Source of the DNA: Mytilus edulis
Lineage: Eukaryota
Reading direction: 5' to 3'
Assembly (NCBI RefSeq): GCF_963676685.1
Contig: NC_092345.1
Coordinates: 11,346,001 to 11,410,000 of the forward strand
Length of the DNA stretch: 64,000 nt
Part shown: positions 24,629 through 38,200 of the stretch, piece by piece
Layout: each line of letters starts with the position of its first letter
Numbering within the stretch: the stretch's first letter is position 1
The notes under the pieces: model-generated
What the model was told of the DNA's origin: nothing
Databases searched by the model: none
Seen by the model: the letters and a program-made list of their open reading frames with translations, nothing else
Program-made: the position numbers and the translations under genes

Positions 24629-25515
24629 CAAGTACACACCCGTGATATCGCGGGTCCGTGACTGACTTAAAGTATATAACTATGCCTAACCTTATTTTAG
24701 TAATTGGTATTGTCATCTGATAAAGTAATGTCGATTATAAGATACACAGTTTTTTTTTTTGCTTTCAAATCTTTCTGTTTGAACCCGTCGACCTGGAACT
24801 TATCAATTATTGGTAATATTAATTATTTGGAAAACAAAAGGTCCTGGCTATCCAGGAATGGAGTATTTTTTAATCAACAGCATTGTCCTCCTATAGATTA
24901 AAAATTACACCACTCCAGACCCTTTTGTTTTCCACATAACTAATATTGCCAATAATTAACAAGTTCCGGGTCGAATCCGATACCGATACCAATAGTATAT
25001 TCACCTGTTAGCTATTACCTTATCTGTACGTTCCGCATTTGACAGGCGCACCACCAAACGGTGTATTTAGGATTTTGCTATATACACGGGTCATAATCAA
25101 AGGGCTGACACTACTAAATTCTATCATTGTCAAATTGTTCCCTATTGTAGTTTTATTCAGCAATCAGCAAGACTTTCTAAGATAACTAATATAGGACAAA
25201 TTGAATGCTGTTGACCCGTGTATATAGCAAAATCCTAAATACACCGTTTGTTGGTGCGCCTGTCAAATGCGGAACGTACAGATAAGGTAATAGCTAACAG
25301 GTGAATATACTATTGGTATCGGTATCGGATTCGACCCGGAACTTGTTAATTTTTGGCAATATTAATTATGTGGAAAACAAAAGGGTCTGGAGTGGTGTAA
25401 TTTTTAATCTACACCATTGTCCTATATTAGTTCTATATAGAGTTGAATTCTTTGATTTGTCGTTTTTACCCGATGACGGCTGACAAAATGGACCTCGTAA
25501 TTTTAGTATTATAGA
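24629..25515 (-). mobile_element. Non-autonomous Helitron with internal inverted duplication
   Basis: Minus strand starts a|TCTATAATACTAAAA and ends with hairpin CCCGCGATATCACGGG followed by GTACTTG|t (a CTAG variant). It sits between A and T with no TSD. Confidence 0.65.
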
Positions 25516-25530
25516 TACAATTTTTAGCAT

Positions 25531-25632
25531 AGGCACTTGTTTCTGTCAATATGGGGTTTACTATCCATACCCGTACGTAATTTTTCGTACGGGTATGGAT
25601 AGTAAACCCCATATTGACAGAAACAATTGCCT
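25531..25632. repeat. Near-perfect ~47-bp stem hairpin (collapsed palindromic element)
   Basis: AGGCACTTGTTTCTGTCAATATGGGGTTTACTATCCATACCCGTACG, an 8-nt loop, then the reverse complement. Confidence 0.9.
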
Positions 25633-26146
25633 GTGATTTTTAGATATAAAATAATACATGTATAGGCAAATCATTATAGCTGCAATTTAATCAGAATTCA
25701 TTGCATCATCCTCTGTGGATATGAATCTTCTGTTTTTCAACTGCATATACATGTATTGCATAGAAACACAGTATTATTTAAATTTAAGCTGTAACTAGCC
25801 TCTTTTAAAATTATAACCAAACATTTATTCGTTTATCCTTCCCCATGGGTTATCGAAGCCAGATATTAAAACGCACCGTAATCTTTTATTTATTTTAACG
25901 TGTTCATTTATATGAGAAAATGGGTGCAATATTCGAGAAGAAAAGAAAAATGTAATTATAAAATAAACTTGAAAATGAAATAAAGTAATACTTATTGATA
26001 TTTTAAAGATTTCAAATGATCAGAAAATAGGTCAAAGTAATTTTTCTTAACGAAAAGAATGAACAAGAAATATACACTTTAAAATAGAAATTCTGACTGG
26101 TTTAAAAATATCCTCATCGGGTACCAGAAACAGGGAAAACGACAAA

Positions 26147-29100
26147 ATGTCTGACATTGAAAAGTGGATTGAAATAGCAAAAGATTGCAATTACTTGCCA
26201 GAGAATGACCTCAAAGTATGAAGCTTGAGAATTTTAACAATGTCAAACGATGCTTAATGTTAAAATGGGGAAAAAAGAACCCAAGACATGAATCGTCAGA
26301 GTTATTTTTAGAATTCTTTCTCAGTTTCTGTTGTGAAGTTGATATTATTTTATTTTTTAATCGTTTTTACAGTCGGTTTTTCATACTTACTTTCATCACA
26401 TAACTGACAGATTAGCTCTAGCCATATACTCATATATTTAGAGTAATATTTAAGAATTGAATGCTCTTTTTATGCCCCACCTACGATAGTAGAGGGGCAT
26501 TATGTTTTCTGGTCTGTGCGTCCGTCCGTCTGTCTGTCTGTCTATTCGTCCGTCCGTCTGTTTGTTCGTCCGTCCGTCTGTCCCGCTTCAGGTTAAAGTT
26601 TTTGGTCGAGGTAGTTTTTGATGAAGTTGAAGTCCAATCGACTTCAAACTTGGTACACATGTTCCCTATGATATGATCTTTCTAATTTTAATGCCAAATT
26701 AGAGATTTTACCCCAATTTCACGGTCCACTGAACATAGAAAATGATAGTGCGAGTGGGGCATTCGTGTACTGAGGACACATTCTTGTATGTAAATTTATT
26801 GGGGTGTAAAAGCGTTGACCGAAGTACATTTTGTATGAAGCGCGGAAGCATTTCATACTTAAAATGTGCGCACGGTCAACGCTTTTACAACCCTATAAAG
26901 TTACAAAAAAAAGCATTCAATACTTATAATCACATTTTTACCTATAGGATCATGAAAACACGCCTTTTATCAAGTTTTTATTTCATTTACCTGTGCACTT
27001 TATTGTGGGACCTCGTGTCATCATGGATGAGAAGTTTTATTGAGTGACACAACTGCTTAAGGAATAACACATGATGTGCAGTTAGCCAAATAGCAGAATA
27101 ACGTATTGTAATGAAACATACATCTAATGTAATTATTGTAATATGCTTTTGTTTACAGAAATAATCTAATACACCTTATCATGCTTATCACTATTTAGAA
27201 ATCTGTCCCGCTTCGCTTGAAGTTGAACTGTTGACAGCATACAACAATCACTTTTTTTTATTGTGGTTAGGTATCAGATATTTTCTATTATGTCTTTAAA
27301 ATTTTATTGGAACTTTTGTGATGTCCACTGAACTACTGAACTATGTCATGTAATAAAAAAATTATTTGATTTATATATTGACTTTTTATAAATACTTTTT
27401 CAGCGATTATGTGACATGGTATGTGAGTTATTGCTTGAAGAATCCAATGTACAGCCTGTGTCATCCCCTGTCACTGTGTGTGGTGACATTCATGGACAGG
27501 TAAATATTTATCATAGATCCCTCAATTATAGAAGTGTTATGAAGTAGAGGAAAACTTCTTCTATAAGTTGATGAATTAATGCACACCCAAAATTGTGATT
27601 GATTGAACTAGACATGTTCAAAAACTTTCTTGATTAATCTGTCCTGACTAAAGTGAACACTTTCTGAAAAAGATGCCCTATATGTCCTACCTATGATTAT
27701 TAGAAATTAAACTTTTTTTTATCTCAAAATAGAAGATTAATATACATGTACCATGTATATGGATGGCCAATAAAAGGCAATTAGGTAACACCTATATATA
27801 TAGCTACTACATATTACATGTTAAATGATCAATGTTTAGGCCTTTATCATTACATGTCTTTGTGTGCTGAGATTCCAGGCCAGGTAAGTATTTTACTTTG
27901 TTTTTGTATATTGTTCAGTCCATTTCAACATACTCACAGAAGTTTTACCATGTATTGTATCACTTACAAAACTCTGAAATGCACCATTCTACTTTGATAA
28001 ATTATGTCAACCAAGGAAATTTTTATCTTAGAAATTATGAAAGAATAAATTAATAAGACATAACCGTAGGAACTTGCAACAAGTTTTTCACAAAAATGAG
28101 TAGTTGTGAAACAATGTCATGAATGTGAAACAAGAACAAAAGATCTCTACTTTAGTTACCGTAGATCATGTCTTAAGAAACTTCAGAAACTTTGATAGCT
28201 TTGAACATATGCAAATGCCTAAACATCAAATAATATTTACACAGTGCAAAATTTAAAATTATTTTTTAATTTTCCTTCAGTTTTATGACCTGATAGAATT
28301 GTTCAAAACAGGAGGCCAAGCACCTGACACTAATTATATTTTTATGGTAAGTCACCAGACTACGTAACATAGCATTATAGATCTATTGATTATTGAGATT
28401 CTGTATTTAAAAAAAATGAATTACTTGCTAAATATGTAAGCATGAACATGTGGAATGGGATCCCATACCGATTGTTTGTCATGAATGAATGCACCATATA
28501 TATATTTTGTTCTTTTCTATCCCATTTTGAAAAAGTTTTTAATAAAAATTTTAAAGAAATATTAGTACATGTATTTTATACCTCCACTCTAGATGTGGGG
28601 TCGATATTGCATTTACCTTGTCTGTCCATTCCTCCACTCTAGATGTGGGGTCGATATTGCATTTACCTTGTCTGTCCATTCCTCCAACAACACACAATAA
28701 TTTCATATTTAATCAGCAACTTGACAGTGATGAGTTTTAAAATGTAATCATTTGTTTTTTATTCTTCAGATTAACTGATTCATTGAATTTTTCAATACCT
28801 TGAAATATGAACTTTAAAAATAATTGGTCCTCAAATATAACTGCACTGAATGACTTTATAGTTAGATATTTCAGACACTTATCATTGGCAGAATTGTTAT
28901 AGTTCTTATATTTTGTATGATGTAAATATATATACATGATATAATGAGTTTTATATAATATGAACAGTGAACAGAAACTTTGATTTCATTCTAGGGTGAT
29001 TTTGTAGACCGAGGATATTACAGTTTAGAAACTTTTACGTTACTGCTCACATTAAAGGCAAGGTAGGTCTGCTTGGTATGAACACTGTTGAAAGGTTGTC

Positions 29101-32100
29101 AGTCTTATTTTTAAAATATATGTCTTATATCTCGTTCACCTTGTACATTTGTTTGTCTAACAAATTTTTCACTAATACATGTACTTCTGAACAGAAGGGC
29201 TTCATGTTTAATCAGAAGTTTGATAGTGATAAGTTGTGTGCAAATCTACTTTCTGTTTTATAGGAATTGAAAACTAAACACTCATAGTTGTAAATATTGT
29301 AATAATTATAAAGAAAGGTAAAAAGAAATCTCTGTACATGTATAAAGGGAGAAATTGTATGGAAACCAGATGTTAGATGTTGATGACTGAAAAAATTAGA
29401 TAAAAAAGTTATTTGATTTTATGAAAATATGTTGATGATTTTTATATTGAAGAAAATATGTATGTAAGAGATTGTCACTGAATTTTTGATGGTTTTCAAG
29501 TTTTATATTTGATCTAGGTCAACGTATTTCAATGTTTAGACAATAACTCTAAATATCAGCACAACTATGTTAAATTTGCAAATTTGATTCCAAATATAAA
29601 AAAATCTCACACCAGGACTAGAGTTCATGCATAATATATTCAAATTCAATTCCTTCTAAAAAAATGCACTATCATTATAGACATGACTTGATATTAAAAG
29701 AACTAAAAATGAATTTGAATGTTTTAGGTGGCCAGACAAAATGACCCTACTGAGAGGTAACCACGAAAGCAGACAGATAACACAGATATATGGATTCTAT
29801 GGTAATGAAGAATTCGTTTTTGACCATCTTCCAAATGACAAACACAGAAATAGATATAAGAAGATGTGGTATGAGTGCCAATGAGACAACTCTCCATCCA
29901 AGTCACAATTTGTAAAAGTAAACCATAATAGGTCAAAGTACAGTTTTCAAAACGGAGCCTTGACTCACACCTACCCCAAAAATGACTAGTGTAAAACCAT
30001 TGAAACATGAAAACTGACTGTATAATTTATATAAATACAAGAAACACCTATGAACCACATCAACAAAGTACAACCACTGAACATCAGGTTCCTGACTTAG
30101 AATAGGTGCAAACAAATGCAGGAACTACATTTACTTCAGGATTAGCAGGGGCAATTTCCCCTCTCATCATTGCCAATACATTACATGTAAATATGGTCCT
30201 GTAATTTAGAAACTAATTATATATTAAATTATGTTTTTTTATGTTAGCAGTCTTATTGGTCTGAATGAATTTGTCACTCTTAAATGTGAATCTACTGAAT
30301 TTGTCACTCTTAAATGTGAATCTGCTGTATTTGTCACTCTTAAATGTGAATCTACTGAATTTGTCACTCTTAAATGTGAATCTACTGAATTTGTCACTCA
30401 TTAATTTGAATCTACTGAATTTGTCACTCTTAAATGTGAATCTACTGAAATTGCTGAAGGAAACAACTGCTGATTTAAAAGTCAAGCAAAAGATACTAAA
30501 CATTGCTAAAGGGACATTCAAGACTGAAGACATTGAAGAAAAACTGGCACATCATGGCAGAAAATGATTATCTTGAAAGACAAAACAACAGTCTATTAAA
30601 CACTACATAGAAAGCTATAAACTGACAACCAATGAACTTCTGCTCCACTAGTGGCACCCATCATGTTGCTCATGGTAATTACACTTGTGGGGAAAGTAAA
30701 GGATGTATGCCTTTTTGTAAAATGAAAACAAATGTGTTTAAATATCAGAAATTGAATTAATTATGGTTTTTATATAAAGATTCAAATGACACACACCTGG
30801 AAACATGTTTGTTATTTAACCCCCTCAAAATAAAATCCTTTATCTGCCCCTTAAAGAATGATGTCTCCGTATAACGTATAAATATTTGTTTGTGTTATAC
30901 AGATGAGTGCCAGACAAAGTATGGTAATGCTAATGCATGGAGATATTGTTGTAAAGTATTTGATCTACTAACAGTTGCAGCAGTAAGTTTATAACAGTGA
31001 TTAAACGCTGTTGCAGTACATGTTAACAAATGTTGAAACCTAATACAGTGTTTATACACTTTTGTTGTACAAGTAAGGAAATTCTGAATAAATGTGTGAT
31101 ATAAATATATATTTCAATATTAAATAAGTATGTCACCTCAATCAGGTCAATTTACATTTAGTGTTTATGCACCTATCACAGACAGGGCATATTGCCATGG
31201 ACATTATGCATCATTCATCCATCCATCAACGCTTCCTTTAATAAGTCAAATTTTCTTTCACCAATTCTAGTTAAATTTTTTCCCAAAACATTAGGATTGA
31301 AGGAAGAAAATTTTCTGGTTTGTAATTCGATTGTTACAGTACTTTGATTATCAAATTGAAGCAAAATTTTCACATGTGCCATAACTTTGGTTCGCTTGGA
31401 TTACACAATAACTCTTATAAGAATTCATCTGGTAATTTTTGCGGCAATAGATAGTATGCAGATCAAATATCATAAAAAAAAATTATTTGAGCATTTTAAT
31501 AAATGTATATGCGAGCACAATTATATTGAATATGATAAAGTAGTGTGTGATATAAAAAACCTATGAAATGTATGCCACCTTAATATGACCTGATATTCAT
31601 TTGTGTACATTTAATTTGAATGCATTCACATCAGCTATCATTCTTATGAATCTGTAATATAAAATGCTGAATTAGTTTGCTAGATTGACTTGAATTTGAA
31701 TTGAAAATATCATTGACTTATTTTATTTTGTATAATTGTAGATAATAGATGAAACAATTTTATGTGTACATGGTGGATTATCACCAGACATTAAAACTAT
31801 TGACCAGATACGTACAATAGAGAGAAATCAAGAAATACCACATAAAGGGGCATTCTGTGATATCCTTTACAAATAATACACTACTCATCAGATGGAATTG
31901 TCCTTGATTGTAGGGACTGGGAATGAACAAAATTTCTGGATCGGGTCCCTGTGTTGTGTTTAAATAATACAATACACCTCACATTGATTTTGCAATGGCT
32001 TTCTGTCTATGATAAAATTTTAGAATGACCAAAACTTCTGGATGGGTCCTTGTGCTTCAATAATACACTACACCTCAAATGGATTTTATAATTTCTACCT

Positions 32101-35100
32101 GTCCATGATTAAAGTGTCTAGAAATGGCCAAAACTTCTTGATGGGTCCTTGTGCTTCAATAATACACTTTACCTCAAAAGGATTTTACAATATCTACCTG
32201 TACATCATTAAAGTGTCTAGAAATGGGCAAAACTTCTAAATGCCACCTATGCTTTATTGGAACACTAAAAGAAAAATTAATTTACATAAAGAATTCAACA
32301 TTTGTATTCAAATTAATACAGTGAATATACAATTTGTACAAAAAAAATATATACAAGAACCTAATTTGATGAGCTGTCCACCATAAGTATGTGGAAGACC
32401 AAACTAACTGTAGTGTACACACAAGCAGCCCTGATTTTATAGCATGATAAATCTTACTCACAAGTAACATTGCATATTCACAAATTTTCCTACCAGGACA
32501 CATTATGACTACTCCTAGCACTAAGATTATTTGTAAAATATAGAAACTGTTTATGAAACAATTTTTCTTGTAAAACTTTTCCTTAACACATTGAACATTT
32601 GGTATGGTCTGATCCAGAAGATGTAGATACATGGTCTGTTAGTCCAAGGGGAGCAGGATGGTTGTTTGGTGCCAAAGTTACCAATGAGGTTAGTATTATA
32701 CATGTTTCTATATCTAAAAGCTAGAGTTTATATAATATTATTAATATTTGACTCCAATTAACCCCATAAATCATTTTTCATGCCACCTTATTAGTCATAT
32801 CTGGACTTTTCAAACACTTCCTGATATTTTATCAAATATAGTCATTAGACCATTCAGGCACCTATAAAATCAATCACATATAGTCATTAGACCTTTCAGG
32901 CACCTACAAAATCAATCACATAAGTCATTCGACCTTTCAGGCACCTAAAAATTCAATCATATATAGACATTAGACCTTTCAGGCACCTATAAAATCAATC
33001 ACATATAGTCATTAGACCTTTCAGGCACCTATAAAATCAACTTGAACTGATTGTGACACTTACCAAAAAGCAATATTAAAGTTTTATATACATTACATTT
33101 GATAAATGTATCTTGTTGACTGTTCCCTAGTTTCAAATATATATGATTAACTTCTATATAAAAATGAGGAGATATAGGATAATTGCCAATGAGACCATAG
33201 GACTAAGATGTTAACACTATAGGTCATCTTAAGGATGTACTTAGGTGAGGTTTTGGAATTTGTGTCAAATGTTCGGACAACTTGGTGTTTTTCCATACAA
33301 TACAATGTAAAATATTTTGCCCCATAAGACCCATTTATTTTTTCATATAAGACTAAATAGCTCATGAAAAGTCATTTACCAAAAATTTAGAAGATTCTTG
33401 ATTTTCTTTCTTTTGTTTTGAGACCCAAATAATACCAATGCAAATAAAACGTAAAAGTCCGAGTCAGCCTTTTCTCGCCATATTTTAAATCTCAAATATT
33501 TCGAGAAGGAGGTCCATGACCTATCAATAATTTTAGTTTATCTTAATCCTTAATTAATGCTTCATCAGCTTATATTATCAATTTCTTAATTTCTTAATTT
33601 TTACCTAACCTCACCTAAGTACATCCTTAAGACCTTCAACAATGAGCAAAATCCATTCTGTTTATTAGGCTATAAAAGACCCTGACATCACAAAATGTAA
33701 AACAATCCGAAAGGAAAAACCATTAGCCTGATTTAGGCTAAAAGGAAACTAATCAAAGAACAAATATTACAGTAACTAACAACAATCTCTGAATTAAAGG
33801 ATCTTGAATATGGTTATGCACAGTTTATAGATATAGGAAGATGTGGTATGAGTGCCAATGAGACACTCTTCATCCAAGTAACAATTTATAAAAGTAAACC
33901 ATTATAATAGGTCAAGGTACGGCCTTCAACATGAAGCCTTGGCTCACACCGAACAGCAAGCTATAAAGGGCCCCAAAACTGATTACTAGTGTAAATCTAT
34001 TGAAATGGGGAAAACCAACGGTCTAATCTTTTTAAAAATGAGAAACGAGAAACATATGAACAACATTAACAGACGACAACTACTGTACATCAGATTCCTG
34101 ACTTTGGACAGGTGGAAACATTTGCTGCGGGATTAAACGTTTTAATAGTATGTTTGTGAACACTCAACCTTCCCTTTACCAGAATTAGTTTTTTTCAAAG
34201 CCTGTAATGCAGTTATTCAATTGTATAAAAATTAAAAAGTGCTATATATTGGAATCAAATTTGAATGTTTGTAATATATGTTTACAATTCTGTTTTAGTT
34301 TGTACATATAAACGGTTTGAAGTTGATATGTCGAGCTCATCAGTTAGTGCATGAAGGTAAGTTACTTTAGTTTTTTGTTGGATTTTTTTAATTTTGAATT
34401 GTCCATGTTTGTCTTGATTTGAAATTGCATTGAAAAACCTTCTCATGGTGTGGTCCTGCACTTTGAAAACAACCTCCACCACTAGTTTGTCACATTTATA
34501 GCTTTAGAGCATACTTGTACTAAACAATAATGGAAGTACCGGTATAATACAACTCAACATGTAACCCAAACAATGAAGCAAAAGAACTTTCTATTAAAAT
34601 AACCAAATTAAATTTGGATGCAATACGGTTAAATTCACCATATCAAGCCATCTTAGTATTCTTAGTATACATATGAATATAATTTATTTAAACAAAATTT
34701 GGAAATCAATAATACAAGAATTGGATCCACTTTCATACCTGCCATTTTTTTCCAAATCTCCATGGGAGATTTTAAGTACAAGAGGACCTAATGCATATAT
34801 TATATTTGTCATTTATGGTTTTGAATGAGTATACCTGTATTTAAATGTATATTAATTATAAAGAAAATTGGATTTTAAGCCTTTACACACCTACATTTCT
34901 TGTTGTTGTGAAATTTATATCATAGGTTTACATCAGCAATGTAAAGCAATTACAATTATTTTTTATAACATATTGAGTTGAAAAAATTGTATAATTATAA
35001 TAATAAAAAATATGAATTTTAATTTGTACATTTCAGGATATAAGTATATGTTTGATGAGAAGTTAGTAACAGTATGGTCAGCACCTAATTACTGCTACAG

Positions 35101-35227
35101 ATGTGGAAACATTGCCGCAGTATTATCATTTAACGACGCAGATAACAGAGAGGCGAAACTTTTCAGAGCGGTTCCTGATTCAGAACGAGTTATACCAGCA
35201 AAGTCAACAACACCATACTTTTTATAG
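26147..35227 (+). CDS. PPP6C: Serine/threonine-protein phosphatase 6 catalytic subunit, 303 aa, 10 coding exons
   Basis: Exons 26147-26215, 27404-27499, 28281-28346, 28995-29062, 29728-29801, 30903-30982, 31742-31859, 32597-32688, 34299-34356, 35037-35227 (912 nt). Motifs [36 protein letters not shown]-terminal TPYFL. PP6-specific stretches [31 protein letters not shown]. Confidence 0.97.
26467..26788 (+). mobile_element. HINE / DINE-1-like Helentron-associated non-autonomous element
   Basis: T-rich flank, subterminal inverted ATGCCCC..GGGGCAT, a (CGTC/TGTC)n microsatellite, and 3' GGGGCATTCGTGTACTGAGGACACATTCTTGT. Confidence 0.7.
30264..30449. repeat. 30-bp minisatellite x6 (PPP6C intron 5)
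   Basis: TGAATTTGTCACTCTTAAATGTGAATCTAC repeated. Confidence 0.9.
31860..32596 (+). other. U12-type (minor spliceosome) AT-AC intron, PPP6C intron 7
   Basis: 5' splice site ATATCCTTT, branch point TTTTCCTTAAC at 32577-32587, 3' splice site AC at 32595-32596. Removal restores GAFC-G|AT-LVWSDPE. Confidence 0.93.
32835..33040. repeat. ~42-bp minisatellite x5 (PPP6C intron 8)
   Basis: ATATAGTCATTAGACCTTTCAGGCACCTATAAAATCAATCAC repeated. Confidence 0.85.
33233..33626. mobile_element. Kolobok-type non-autonomous element (TTAA TSD, GG termini)
   Basis: ttaa|GGATGTACTTAGGTGAGGTT...AACCTCACCTAAGTACATCC|ttaa. It interrupts a family-A repeat. Confidence 0.8.
33830..34180 (+). repeat. Dispersed repeat family A (AAGATGTGGTATGA.TGCCAATGAGACAACT...)
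   Basis: Other copies at ~2070-2450(-), 3495-3740, 5740-5945, 12915-13260, 16210-16525, 18180-18495(-), 29855-30120, 42920-43125(-), 54160-54270(-). Confidence 0.75.
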
Positions 35228-38200
35228 AATTAGTTGATAAAGACAAATAATTTCAAACAGAATAGTTGAGTGACAAATAATTTCAAACAGAATAGTTGAG
35301 TGACAAATAATGACAGATTCATATGATTGCAAATGAACTGTTTAAGTAAACGGACCTGTAGAATCAGAAAATTGTATCAAAATAATCATATGTTTGAATT
35401 GACTAATTATTTATTCTGTATGTTTGAAACTAATTATATTGGATAAGGGCATAATCTAGGACAAATTGTGCATAAACAACTACTTAGTTGTGGTCACTTC
35501 TCTTCTTTTTTGTTGCATCTGGATATATACTGTAAAAAATTAACATTAATATGTAGACATTGCAACAATTATGTTCCTCTTATGAAATTCTAGATTATTT
35601 TCTGTTTACTTTAATCATTTGTTATTGTATAACTTTATTCATGAATATATTCACCAATACATGGTTATTCATTAATTTTAATGAAACTAATTATTTTGTA
35701 CATAATTCTCCCTCACAATTTTTCATCTGGGCTATTCCTATAAAATGAATGTGATAGGGTTGTAAAGGACTTCCAAATTTCCCCTACATACAACTTACTC
35801 TATTTTTTTTAGGTTTTGCAAACATCACATTGACAGTAGTAAATGACCAATGACCTATGTCCAAAAATTAATATGTGTTTTTCCTTTCTACAAATGTACA
35901 TCTATTTTATTGGAAAAGCCCTCATTATTTTATTCTGGTATATTTTATTCTGGTATATTTACTGAAGCTGTTTTTAGCCTTATTCAGTTGTTTTGTTTTC
36001 AGCTAAAATTTGAAGCACCTGATTTGGAAATAACAGACAAATGATATTTTCATAAGTATAGTCATCTTTAACTTATTTTGCTGACATAAGAAAGGGAAAC
36101 AATTCTGTGAAGCCTTGAATTCAAAGCTAAAGTTACATATTGTTAAAAGGTGATTTTATATTGAAATATACTTAGTACAGTGGGCTAGTCCTTATTTGTG
36201 ACAAACCATAAAATCTTAAAAAATCACCCAACTGTTTAATATTTGTTATAAATTATTTTAATGGTACTTTTTTTATGTTGGTAGAAATTAATGCTCTATC
36301 AAAGATGTATTTTAATGTATGTGTTAACAGTAATAGAATAAATAAAAGAAAAATGAACTTTCACAAGTTTGCTGCTTATTAAATATGAATCATTTTACTG
36401 TGCCTATCCGATCACCTTTGGGGTATTATAATACCTACAGTGTTACCTGGATAAAAAATTGTCTACACAATTTGTCCATTTAAACTGTACAATAGGTTTT
36501 GTGAGATGTTATCAATAGGTGGTCATTTAACTACCCAGTAAAAAAAAAATCACTAAAAGGTAAAATTTAAATGACTGATAGCTAGCTTGCTTTCCTCATG
36601 TATCATGACCAATGTCCTGAATAGACTATTCTATTTAGATATGGGACATTTAAGCCATTTCTCTTTGTGTCTCTAAACAGTGAAGATGGAAATTTCAATC
36701 AGTGAATTTAGTTTATAAAAAAAAAGATATATGTTTGCTTCATGGTGTTTTAATGTGGGATATATTTTAAGTTTCTGATTCCTGATATGGAATTAAAGTG
36801 TTTGTGAAATGGATTTATTTGGATGGTCCATCTACAATTTTTTTTGTAATTGTGAATAATTCTACAAAATGAATTATGTGTGGCTTGGTGTTTTCTAATG
36901 GGATATATTTTCATGTTATATTACGATTCCTGAAATGGAATAGTAGTGATGCTAAGTTTCATTTAATATTCAGGATCTACTTCAATTGGAATTACTGTTA
37001 AAAACTTATTTTCGATATATAGATTGTATCAAAAAAAAAGTACAAATGGTTTAGTGAATAGAAATTTTAGTGCTTAATTTATTCTTCATTATGAAAGTGG
37101 GATTTACAAGGAATGATTTATTTGTGATTGTTAGCAAAAAAAATAATTTTACAATAATATCTTTATTAGAAAGAACATATTGTGTATTAAATGTAAAATG
37201 TCCTATACCTCAATAGAATAGTCCATTCTTCAGGACATTGGACATGAGGAAAGCAAGCTAGCCATCAGTAATTTAAATTAGCTCTGTCAAAAACAACCAG
37301 GTAAATCTACAGGTAGTTAAATGACCATGCACCTGTTGATGACAGCTCTCACAATACCTATTGTACAATTTAAATGGCCAAATTGTATTGAAATTGTATT
37401 TAAACTGGCCAGGCAATAGGTAATTCACTACCACAAAGGTTATTGGATAAACACAGTAACATTATTTTGTACTGTGTTTTTGAAAAAAGAAACAAGGGTT
37501 GAAATTGTATGTTTCTATCAAAGTGCATTCTTATTTGAATCTAATGACATTTCATCAACAGTTATGTACTATAGATATTTGCAATTTCAATGCATTAACA
37601 TCTCGTTCTGTGGTTGAATTCACTTATCGAATGATAAATGGGCCCTTCCCATAAATATTGTTGATTTGTATAAAATATTCAAGTGGGGAATATTTTCCCA
37701 CATTTTATGTGATTCGCAAAATAGGTGAAGATTACCACTGCACGAGAATTTCCATTTTTACCGTTAAAAATTAAGTGTAATTAATTTTTTATAATGTAAA
37801 TAAAAGTATAGAAATTTGTTTTGGTATTATTCACTTGAACATTATTATGTGATGTTTTAAGAAAAAGAAGGTACATAATGTTACTGTGTAAAAGAAGTAT
37901 TATTAGAAAATATGGTTTGGGGGTAAAAATGCCATTTTTTGGCCATCATTTGGCATGTTTCAATCTTATTTCTGTTGAACTGCAGTCAAATTAACCTGAC
38001 AGGATTGTAGAAAACTCTTTTTGTCGTAAAACATTTGTCTCTTGTGTTCAGTCATGGTTCTTTGACTTTGCATTTTCTGTATATAGAAGCTCATATCATC
38101 TAGTTGCCTAAAACTCAACCTAATTTTACTTCAACAAAGCCACATAAATACTTAACCCTCATTTATAGTTGCTACCACAAGATTATGGTTTTGTGTTTTA

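Follow-up and report, generated by a model that had tools for sequence, protein, structure and literature searches.

Introns of U12 type with AT-AC ends are catalogued in intronIC/IAOD (PMC7367187), in MIDB (PMC6717393) and in a pan-eukaryotic survey (PMC10639083). Conversion between intron classes runs from U12 to U2, and AT-AC introns have been argued to be largely spared from it (PMC7367187), while gain of minor introns is reported to be very rare and molluscs to be relatively rich in them (PMC10639083). Here we describe an intron of this kind in a 64,000-nucleotide (nt) stretch of Mytilus edulis DNA (contig NC_092345.1, positions 11,346,001 to 11,410,000; hereafter the window), namely intron 7 of the gene for the catalytic subunit of protein phosphatase 6 (PP6c). 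As in the catalogued examples, the 5′ splice site (ATATCCTTT) and the branch box (TTCCTTAAC) are exact, the branch point lies close to the 3′ end, a polypyrimidine tract is lacking, the termini are AT and AC and the phase is not zero; again like them, the intron stands alone as a minor intron beside major ones in an evolutionarily old gene with a housekeeping role. No mechanistic difference from the catalogued introns is apparent; vertebrate-type PP6 lacks the intron. We consider it very probable (roughly 0.93) that intron 7 is a constitutive, efficiently removed, U12-dependent AT-AC intron at an old animal site, where it has been kept, converted or lost according to lineage.

Intron 7 and its splicing signals

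Coordinates are window positions on the + strand unless stated otherwise (Table 1). Exon 7 finishes ...GCATTCTGTG (in the longer reading ...AAAGGGGCATTCTGTG) at 31859, and intron 7 opens at 31860 with ATATCCTTT, the longer stretch after the exon being ATATCCTTTACAAATAA. The intron closes ...AAAACTTTTCCTTAACACATTGAAC at 32596, and exon 8 opens ATTTGGTATGGTCTGATCCAGAA at 32597. The 5′ splice site at 31860-31868 agrees with the U12 pattern /[AG]TATCCTT. Near the 3′ end the 8-nt core TCCTTAAC is found at 32580-32587. From its second A (32586) to the final intron base the distance is 10 nt, within the interval of about 10-20 nt expected of a U12 branch box; the segment downstream of this A, CACATTGAAC, contains no polypyrimidine tract. 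Were the intron retained, the reading frame would continue ...CDILYK and then meet the stop TAA at 31874-31876. These motifs are by themselves not rare, since the + strand of the 64-kb window contains six instances of ATATCCTT and two of TCCTTAAC. The weight lies in their placement at both ends of a frame-preserving gap, at a junction verified in RNA; a chance match was excluded because both motifs sit precisely at that junction.

RNA data over 30800-36500 came from two raw-read RNA-seq runs (X21 and X24), both of steady-state RNA from whole tissue, and from contigs of two runs guessed to be RNA (X1 and X4), together representing four studies and two species labels. The joint from 31859 to 32597, which skips 737 nt with AT..AC ends, is present in every run: 10 reads with 8 start points in X21, 38 reads with 9 start points in X24, and contigs with depths of 211.6 in X1 and 128.3 in X4. 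Its placement is ambiguous by 2 nt, and the other possible cuts are TA..CA and AT..AT only, never GT..AG. In X1 and X4, the contigs with the AT-AC joint are spliced at 32688/34299 and 34356/35037 as well, and that of X1 at 30982/31742 (intron 6) too, in each case with GT..AG ends; because the same molecules skip GT-AG introns, the contigs represent spliced mRNA. The reads of X21 are stranded, and their first mates lie on the minus strand only, which fits a transcript from the + strand.

The intron is removed efficiently in these samples. Read depth in the interior of intron 7 is 0 in X24 and at most 0.98 in X21, there in one bin that overlaps a repeat, and bins containing exons have mean depths of 12-18 per orientation in the two runs. 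Outside repeats, no retention of intron 7 above that of the GT-AG introns 6, 8 and 9 was seen in X21 or X24; retention is negligible and does not exceed that of its GT-AG neighbours. The 99-nt tandem repeat within the intron is a passenger that lies outside the splice signals. Contig depth of the X1 run over this repeat (31954-32237) is low and probably comes from other copies of the repeat.

An earlier note on this DNA, made from the sequence alone, had proposed a U12-type AT-AC intron at this place in PP6c. Its description of the 737-nt gap, the start of the intron, the branch box, the AC end and the in-frame TAA holds throughout on re-reading, as do its exon sizes of 118+92=210 nt for window exons 7 and 8. 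The single 210-nt exon that it ascribed to human PPP6C agrees, indirectly only, with vertebrate-type ORF fragments in which this site is passed without a break. The check it had named, reads joining 31859 to 32597, turned up exactly that joint in four runs, and its statement that no usable GT-AG pair exists agrees with the cuts offered by the junction ambiguity (AT..AC, TA..CA and AT..AT, no GT..AG). The class assignment itself is borne out by the consensus signals, the junctions in four runs, the four minor small nuclear RNAs (snRNAs) considered next and the U12 signals in other taxa.

All four minor snRNAs, with complementary recognition boxes, are encoded in the genome assembly (G000, 1.37 Gb), each above the Rfam gathering score: U12 at 120.9 bits, U11 at 96.2, U6atac at 93.5 and U4atac at 80.2. 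The U12 genes read ...GAGTAAGGAAAATAATG..., with the recognition box GTAAGGAAAA, in which TAAGGAAAA is the exact complement of TTTTCCTTA in intron 7; the U12 G preceding TAAGGAAAA could pair with the C after the branch A and so bulge that A. The U11 5′ end is AAAAAGGGC and the U6atac box AAAGGAGAGA, and boxes of these types are known to pair with the 5′ splice site ATATCCTTT. Judging from this complementarity, the snRNAs would pair with intron 7 along the established minor-spliceosome pathway, from which the following steps are taken. The U11/U12 small nuclear ribonucleoprotein dimer (di-snRNP) would bind co-operatively, U11 on ATATCCTTT and U12 on TTTTCCTTAAC with A 32586 bulged; U4atac/U6atac.U5 would then join, and U6atac would take over the 5′ splice site from U11. 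Ligation of the exons as G|AT would restore the Asp codon in ...KGAFC-D-LVWSDPE....

The intron 7 site in other animals

The same codon position was compared in two sets of sequences. One consisted of open reading frame (ORF) type ‘proteins’ from genomic contigs, which run across the exon edge into the intron; the other came from metagenome contigs scanned with an alignment of exon-7 fragments and comprised 80 loci. In the peptides, DIL followed by Y, F or S after ...KGAFC denotes G|ATATCCTTT, DLVWSDPE denotes absence of an intron, and GK, GE and GA denote G|GTAAR, GTGAR and GTGCN, respectively. On the 3′ side, H (CAT) before LVWSDPE denotes an intron ending in AC, and D after an N-Y-A codon denotes a YAG end. 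A search of representative sequences with exon 10 yielded for the most part ORF fragments and odd isoforms, and several of these look vertebrate-type.

Among the ORF fragments, the code for G|ATATCCTTT is found in Dreissena polymorpha KAH3798195.1, P0151, P0160 and P0169, and the U2-type codes GK, GE or GA in P0157, P0159, P0163, P0167, P0168 and P0182, while vertebrate-type and insect-type fragments read through with no intron. P0158, known as a peptide alone, reads GIL, which is compatible with GTATCCTT and is possibly a GT-AG U12 intermediate. The sole fragment with H before LVWSDPE is P0216, whose exon-8 peptide is identical in 28/28 residues to Argopecten irradians PP6c. The AT-AC state is shared by bivalve-type sequences from several orders, namely the window, Dreissena and the Argopecten-identical fragment, and P0151, which is oyster-compatible, is probably a further case. 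It also occurs in at least one chelicerate-like sequence, P0160, which matches spider PP6c at 37/39 positions (31/33 on the core) and has the unusual SPLI and IKRNQ residues in common with it, and in several sequences of unassigned taxon. Intron ends of AG type, with upstream residues unlike GAFC, are seen in fragments identical to Haliotis, Patella, Littorina and Elysia/Plakobranchus, and AG-type ends are likewise found in fragments identical to Trichoplax and to the sponge Corticium. As a side observation, Haliotis rubra XP_046555159.1 (P0280) reads ...HKGPLCNLVWSDPE in place of the ...HKGAFCDLVWSDPE of every other mollusc PP6c retrieved, a difference that may be a gene-model artefact at the intron 7 junction or real divergence.

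The metagenome loci show the same three states at nucleotide level. No intron interrupts the Cys/Asp site in 67/80, a U2-type 5′ splice site (GTGCGT, GTACGT or GTGAGT) follows it in 9/80, and ATATCCTT does so in 4/80. The four U2-type loci that reach exon 8 (L031, L034, L050 and L070) have a ...TAG 3′ end. Complete AT-AC introns are available from L022 (1184 nt; ATATCCTTAAC...TTTTCCTTAGC-10 nt-AC, with the 3′ end TTTTCCTTAGCCTGCATAC|AT) and from L029 (616 nt; ATATCCTTTAT...ACCTTAAC-10 nt-AC, with the 3′ end ACCTTAACAGTTTGTAC|AT), and the spacing between branch A and AC end is exactly 10 nt in the window, L022 and L029 alike. L023 and L044 have the 5′ splice site ATATCCTTT on contigs that stop short of exon 8. 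A transcript-like spliced contig, L020 (Ga0099820_1082137), reads an uninterrupted CDLVWSDPE and derives from an organism related to that of L029 (Ga0099811_1097859), with 86-89% nucleotide identity exon by exon; the PP6c protein of this pair shares ~90% identity with vertebrate PP6c. When identities to named proteins are compared, L023 comes out as mollusc-like, and L029, L022 and L044 are not clearly molluscan. Going by the JGI sample names, which we did not use as evidence, the L029/L020 samples may be coral-associated and those of L063-L070 may come from gutless worms. In all, U12 signals are conserved at the orthologous position in L022, L029, L023, L044, Dreissena, P0151, P0160, P0169 and P0216.

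Since conversion is held to run from U12 to U2 and gain to be very rare, the simplest history would be an ancestral U12 intron that was kept as AT-AC in bivalve-type and some other lineages, converted to a U2-type GT-AG intron in gastropod-type and other lineages, and lost from PP6 in vertebrate-type and insect-type genes. The more specific proposal is that the Cys|Asp site of PP6c holds an ancestral metazoan U12 AT-AC intron surviving in three states: U12 in bivalves, chelicerate-like taxa and some others; U2-type in gastropods and in sponge-/placozoan-like and annelid-like sequences, the last label coming from sample names; and absent in vertebrates and insects. We would put the chance that this proposal is right at about even. 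Of the two origins that the earlier note had offered, an ancient intron lost in vertebrates is favoured by the occupation of the same phase-1 site in distant animals, and a lineage-specific intron is disfavoured by it. The note had further warned that gene finders limited to GT-AG introns would mis-annotate such a gene, and Dreissena polymorpha KAH3798195.1 (P0154, DPMN_151788) is a real instance: it is a 72-amino-acid (aa) ‘hypothetical protein’ in which exon 7 is read on across G|ATATCCTT into intron sequence.

Gene structure and paralogues

The junctions of introns 6-9 are RNA-verified, and those of introns 1-5 are drawn from sequence and tblastn with Haliotis PP6; homology queries were single exons, natural proteins or ORFs. 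Eight of the nine introns are GT-AG and one is AT-AC. The 39 whole codons of exon 7 align to residues 158-195 of PP2A-C and exon 8 aligns to residues 197-224, with a single residue, the Asp split as G|AT, spanning the junction and no residue missing relative to PP2A-C; because this lone codon spans the junction, intron 7 is of phase 1.

Table 1. Positions of the PP6 catalytic-subunit gene, its coding exons and the elements of intron 7 in the window.
Feature	Positions	Strand	Remarks
U12-type AT-AC intron 7	31860..32596	+	737 nt, phase 1; joint 31859->32597 in four runs and signals in sequence
5′ splice site ATATCCTTT	31860..31868	+	9/9 against U12 consensus
Branch-point box TTTTCCTTAAC	32577..32587	+	branch A at 32586
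3′ terminal AC	32595..32596	+	sequence and RNA joint
In-frame TAA met on intron 7 retention	31874..31876	+	read-through translation
99-nt tandem repeat in intron 7	31954..32237	not assigned	2.9 copies, 85% match
PP6 catalytic-subunit gene, coding part	26147..35227	+	10 exons, 909 nt = 303 codons + stop
Coding exon 1	26147-26215	+	sequence, tblastn
Coding exon 2	27404-27499	+	sequence, tblastn
Coding exon 3	28281-28346	+	sequence, tblastn
Coding exon 4	28995-29062	+	sequence, tblastn
Coding exon 5	29728-29801	+	sequence, tblastn
Coding exon 6	30903-30982	+	3′ junction RNA-verified
Coding exon 7	31742-31859	+	118 nt; last base G is first of Asp codon
Coding exon 8	32597-32688	+	92 nt; begins with AT of Asp codon
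Coding exon 9	34299-34356	+	RNA-verified junctions
Coding exon 10	35037-35224	+	5′ junction RNA-verified
Stop codon	35225-35227	+	PP6 gene

By its predicted protein the gene is the PP6 catalytic subunit (PPP6C / PpV / Sit4 group), nearer to named PP6c than to PP2A or PP4. The whole-codon exon pieces are identical to Crassostrea PP6c at 253/276 positions and to other molluscs and a lizard at 244-252/276, the lizard standing at 244/276; lizard PP6c and one vertebrate-like protein served solely as identity yardsticks. Full-length relatives are named ‘serine/threonine-protein phosphatase 6 catalytic subunit’ at source, and the window protein ends ...TTPYFL, as do the named PP6c proteins. In the PDB the best chains for exon 7 are a calcineurin fusion construct, in which two segment copies were scored, and PP2A-C (43 bits), and for exon 8 the best is PP2A-C (28 bits). 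No PP6c chain was found in the PDB, and PP2A-C was used only to judge residue continuity at the junction.

One locus in G000 matches exon 7 at 100%, and a second PP6 locus or retrocopy was ruled out on this basis. The next-best loci are paralogues, with identities of 66% and 58% on exon 7; they comprise a PP4-like and a PP2A-like gene. The PP4-like gene reads an uninterrupted ...PMCDLLWSDPE at the intron 7 site, and in the PP2A-like gene an intron follows PHE, three codons upstream, with none at the intron 7 site; the position of intron 7 is therefore specific to PP6, and the idea of an intron shared among the paralogues was rejected.

Three observations concern the other introns. An Rfam scan of 25000-37000 detected no RNA gene within introns. 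Intron 8 (32689-34298) holds a dispersed repeat of ~402 bp at 33230-33632, which matches no Rfam family and has 40 scored copies at ~92% identity on 14 G000 contigs, out of 4302 first-look candidates; this repeat explains why RNA depth reaches the hundreds on either strand, with many loose ends, at 33092-34237. In intron 5, long regular periodicity in the + translation of 30265-30564 reflects a short-period tandem repeat.

Alternative explanations and relation to known systems

Rare U2-type AT-AC introns, which are handled by the major spliceosome, do exist (PMC7367187, Table 2), but it is extremely unlikely that intron 7 is one of them: its 5′ splice site is ATATCCTTT and not ATAAGT-like, its TTCCTTAAC box is perfect, is placed 10 nt from the 3′ end and is not accompanied by a polypyrimidine tract, and the identical box and spacing are kept in L022 and L029. 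We give practically no credence to the idea that the 737 bp are an allele-specific insertion or a mis-assembly, with the joint arising from DNA without the insert or from a reverse-transcription jump. The tandem repeat within the intron and the 2-nt microhomology at the joint would suit such an artefact, but the mRNA contigs with the joint are the very ones that skip GT-AG introns, the joint recurs across four studies (two RNA-seq runs of raw reads, and the contigs of two guessed-RNA runs), and full U12 signals stand at the ends of the intron, as they do in orthologous introns of different length and sequence. Specific gain of a minor intron in the mussel or bivalve lineage would be in keeping with its absence from vertebrate-type and insect-type PP6 and from the two paralogues in G000, one PP2A-like and one PP4-like. 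Yet the same phase-1 site is occupied in gastropod-, Trichoplax- and sponge-identical, spider-like and several unassigned sequences, the AT-AC/U12 form reaches beyond bivalve-type sequences (P0160, the L029 group and L044), and gains of minor introns are very rare (PMC10639083); such a gain is thus very unlikely.

Somewhat more room, although still little, is left for a regulatory switch, in which slow, rate-limiting removal of intron 7 would set PP6 output according to minor-spliceosome (U6atac) activity and the retained RNA would be degraded. Retention would give a premature stop after ...CDILYK, and the general idea is published for human minor introns (PMC3728624). Against the switch, depth in intron 7 is 0 to ~1, whereas exon bins average 12-18 per orientation and the junction has 10-38 reads; the intron 7 depth does not differ from that of the GT-AG introns 6, 8 and 9 outside repeats, a comparison that holds for steady-state whole-tissue RNA only. 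Because no excess of intron 7 retention was seen, gating of PP6 dosage by the minor spliceosome finds no support in these data, which neither back nor refute it, and we regard it as improbable.

Several points weigh against our preferred reading of a constitutive U12-dependent intron at an old site. The statement on retention draws on two runs of whole tissue, of which 6% and 18% were sampled. Dependence on U11, U12, U4atac and U6atac is something we infer from sequence complementarity. Most taxon labels rest on short exact peptide matches (28-39 aa), and only Dreissena is named. The U12 to U2 direction of conversion is borrowed from the literature (PMC7367187).

The practical consequences are modest and lie mainly in annotation and in use as a marker. 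Gene models of mollusc PP6c need to allow an AT-AC intron at this place, where the Dreissena GenBank model breaks, and a verified U12 intron in a conserved bivalve housekeeping phosphatase offers a means of assaying how the minor spliceosome functions in molluscs. A single orthologous position that appears to show retention, class conversion and loss of a minor intron among animals is mildly interesting for intron evolution. Should the three-state proposal be true, the site would offer a natural series for conversion of an AT-AC minor intron to a major one, in a subtype thought to be conversion-resistant. Understanding of how minor introns work is unchanged, and regulation of PP6 through intron 7 has no evidence here.

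Searches of the searchable literature for a U12 or minor intron in PP6c, an AT-AC intron in protein phosphatase 6 and the minor spliceosome in bivalves returned no report. The nearest described case within the gene family is human PPP6C, which MIDB lists as having a minor intron (‘HumanOnly’; PMC6717393, supplementary files 2, 3, 8). The intron listed there, 614 nt long and GT-AG, belongs to an alternative transcript (ENST00000451402); its 5′ splice site, CGG|GTATCCAGT, is weak and its branch box is TTCTCCTTAACC. It lies at a different position from intron 7, because the exon context CGG cannot be a Cys-Asp (TGY G|AY) junction. Also related are the instances of U12-to-U2 conversion and subtype switching described in PMC7367187 (Table 1 and text). 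The PP6c site likewise holds a U12 AT-AC intron in bivalve-type sequences, a U2-type intron (GTAAG, GTGAG or GTGCG ... AG) in gastropod-type and other sequences, and elsewhere no intron. In contrast to the view that AT-AC introns largely escape class conversion (PMC7367187), an AT-AC intron at PP6c appears to have U2-type GT-AG orthologues. Set beside these systems, intron 7 is a textbook-quality U12 AT-AC intron, a new instance of a well-known kind.

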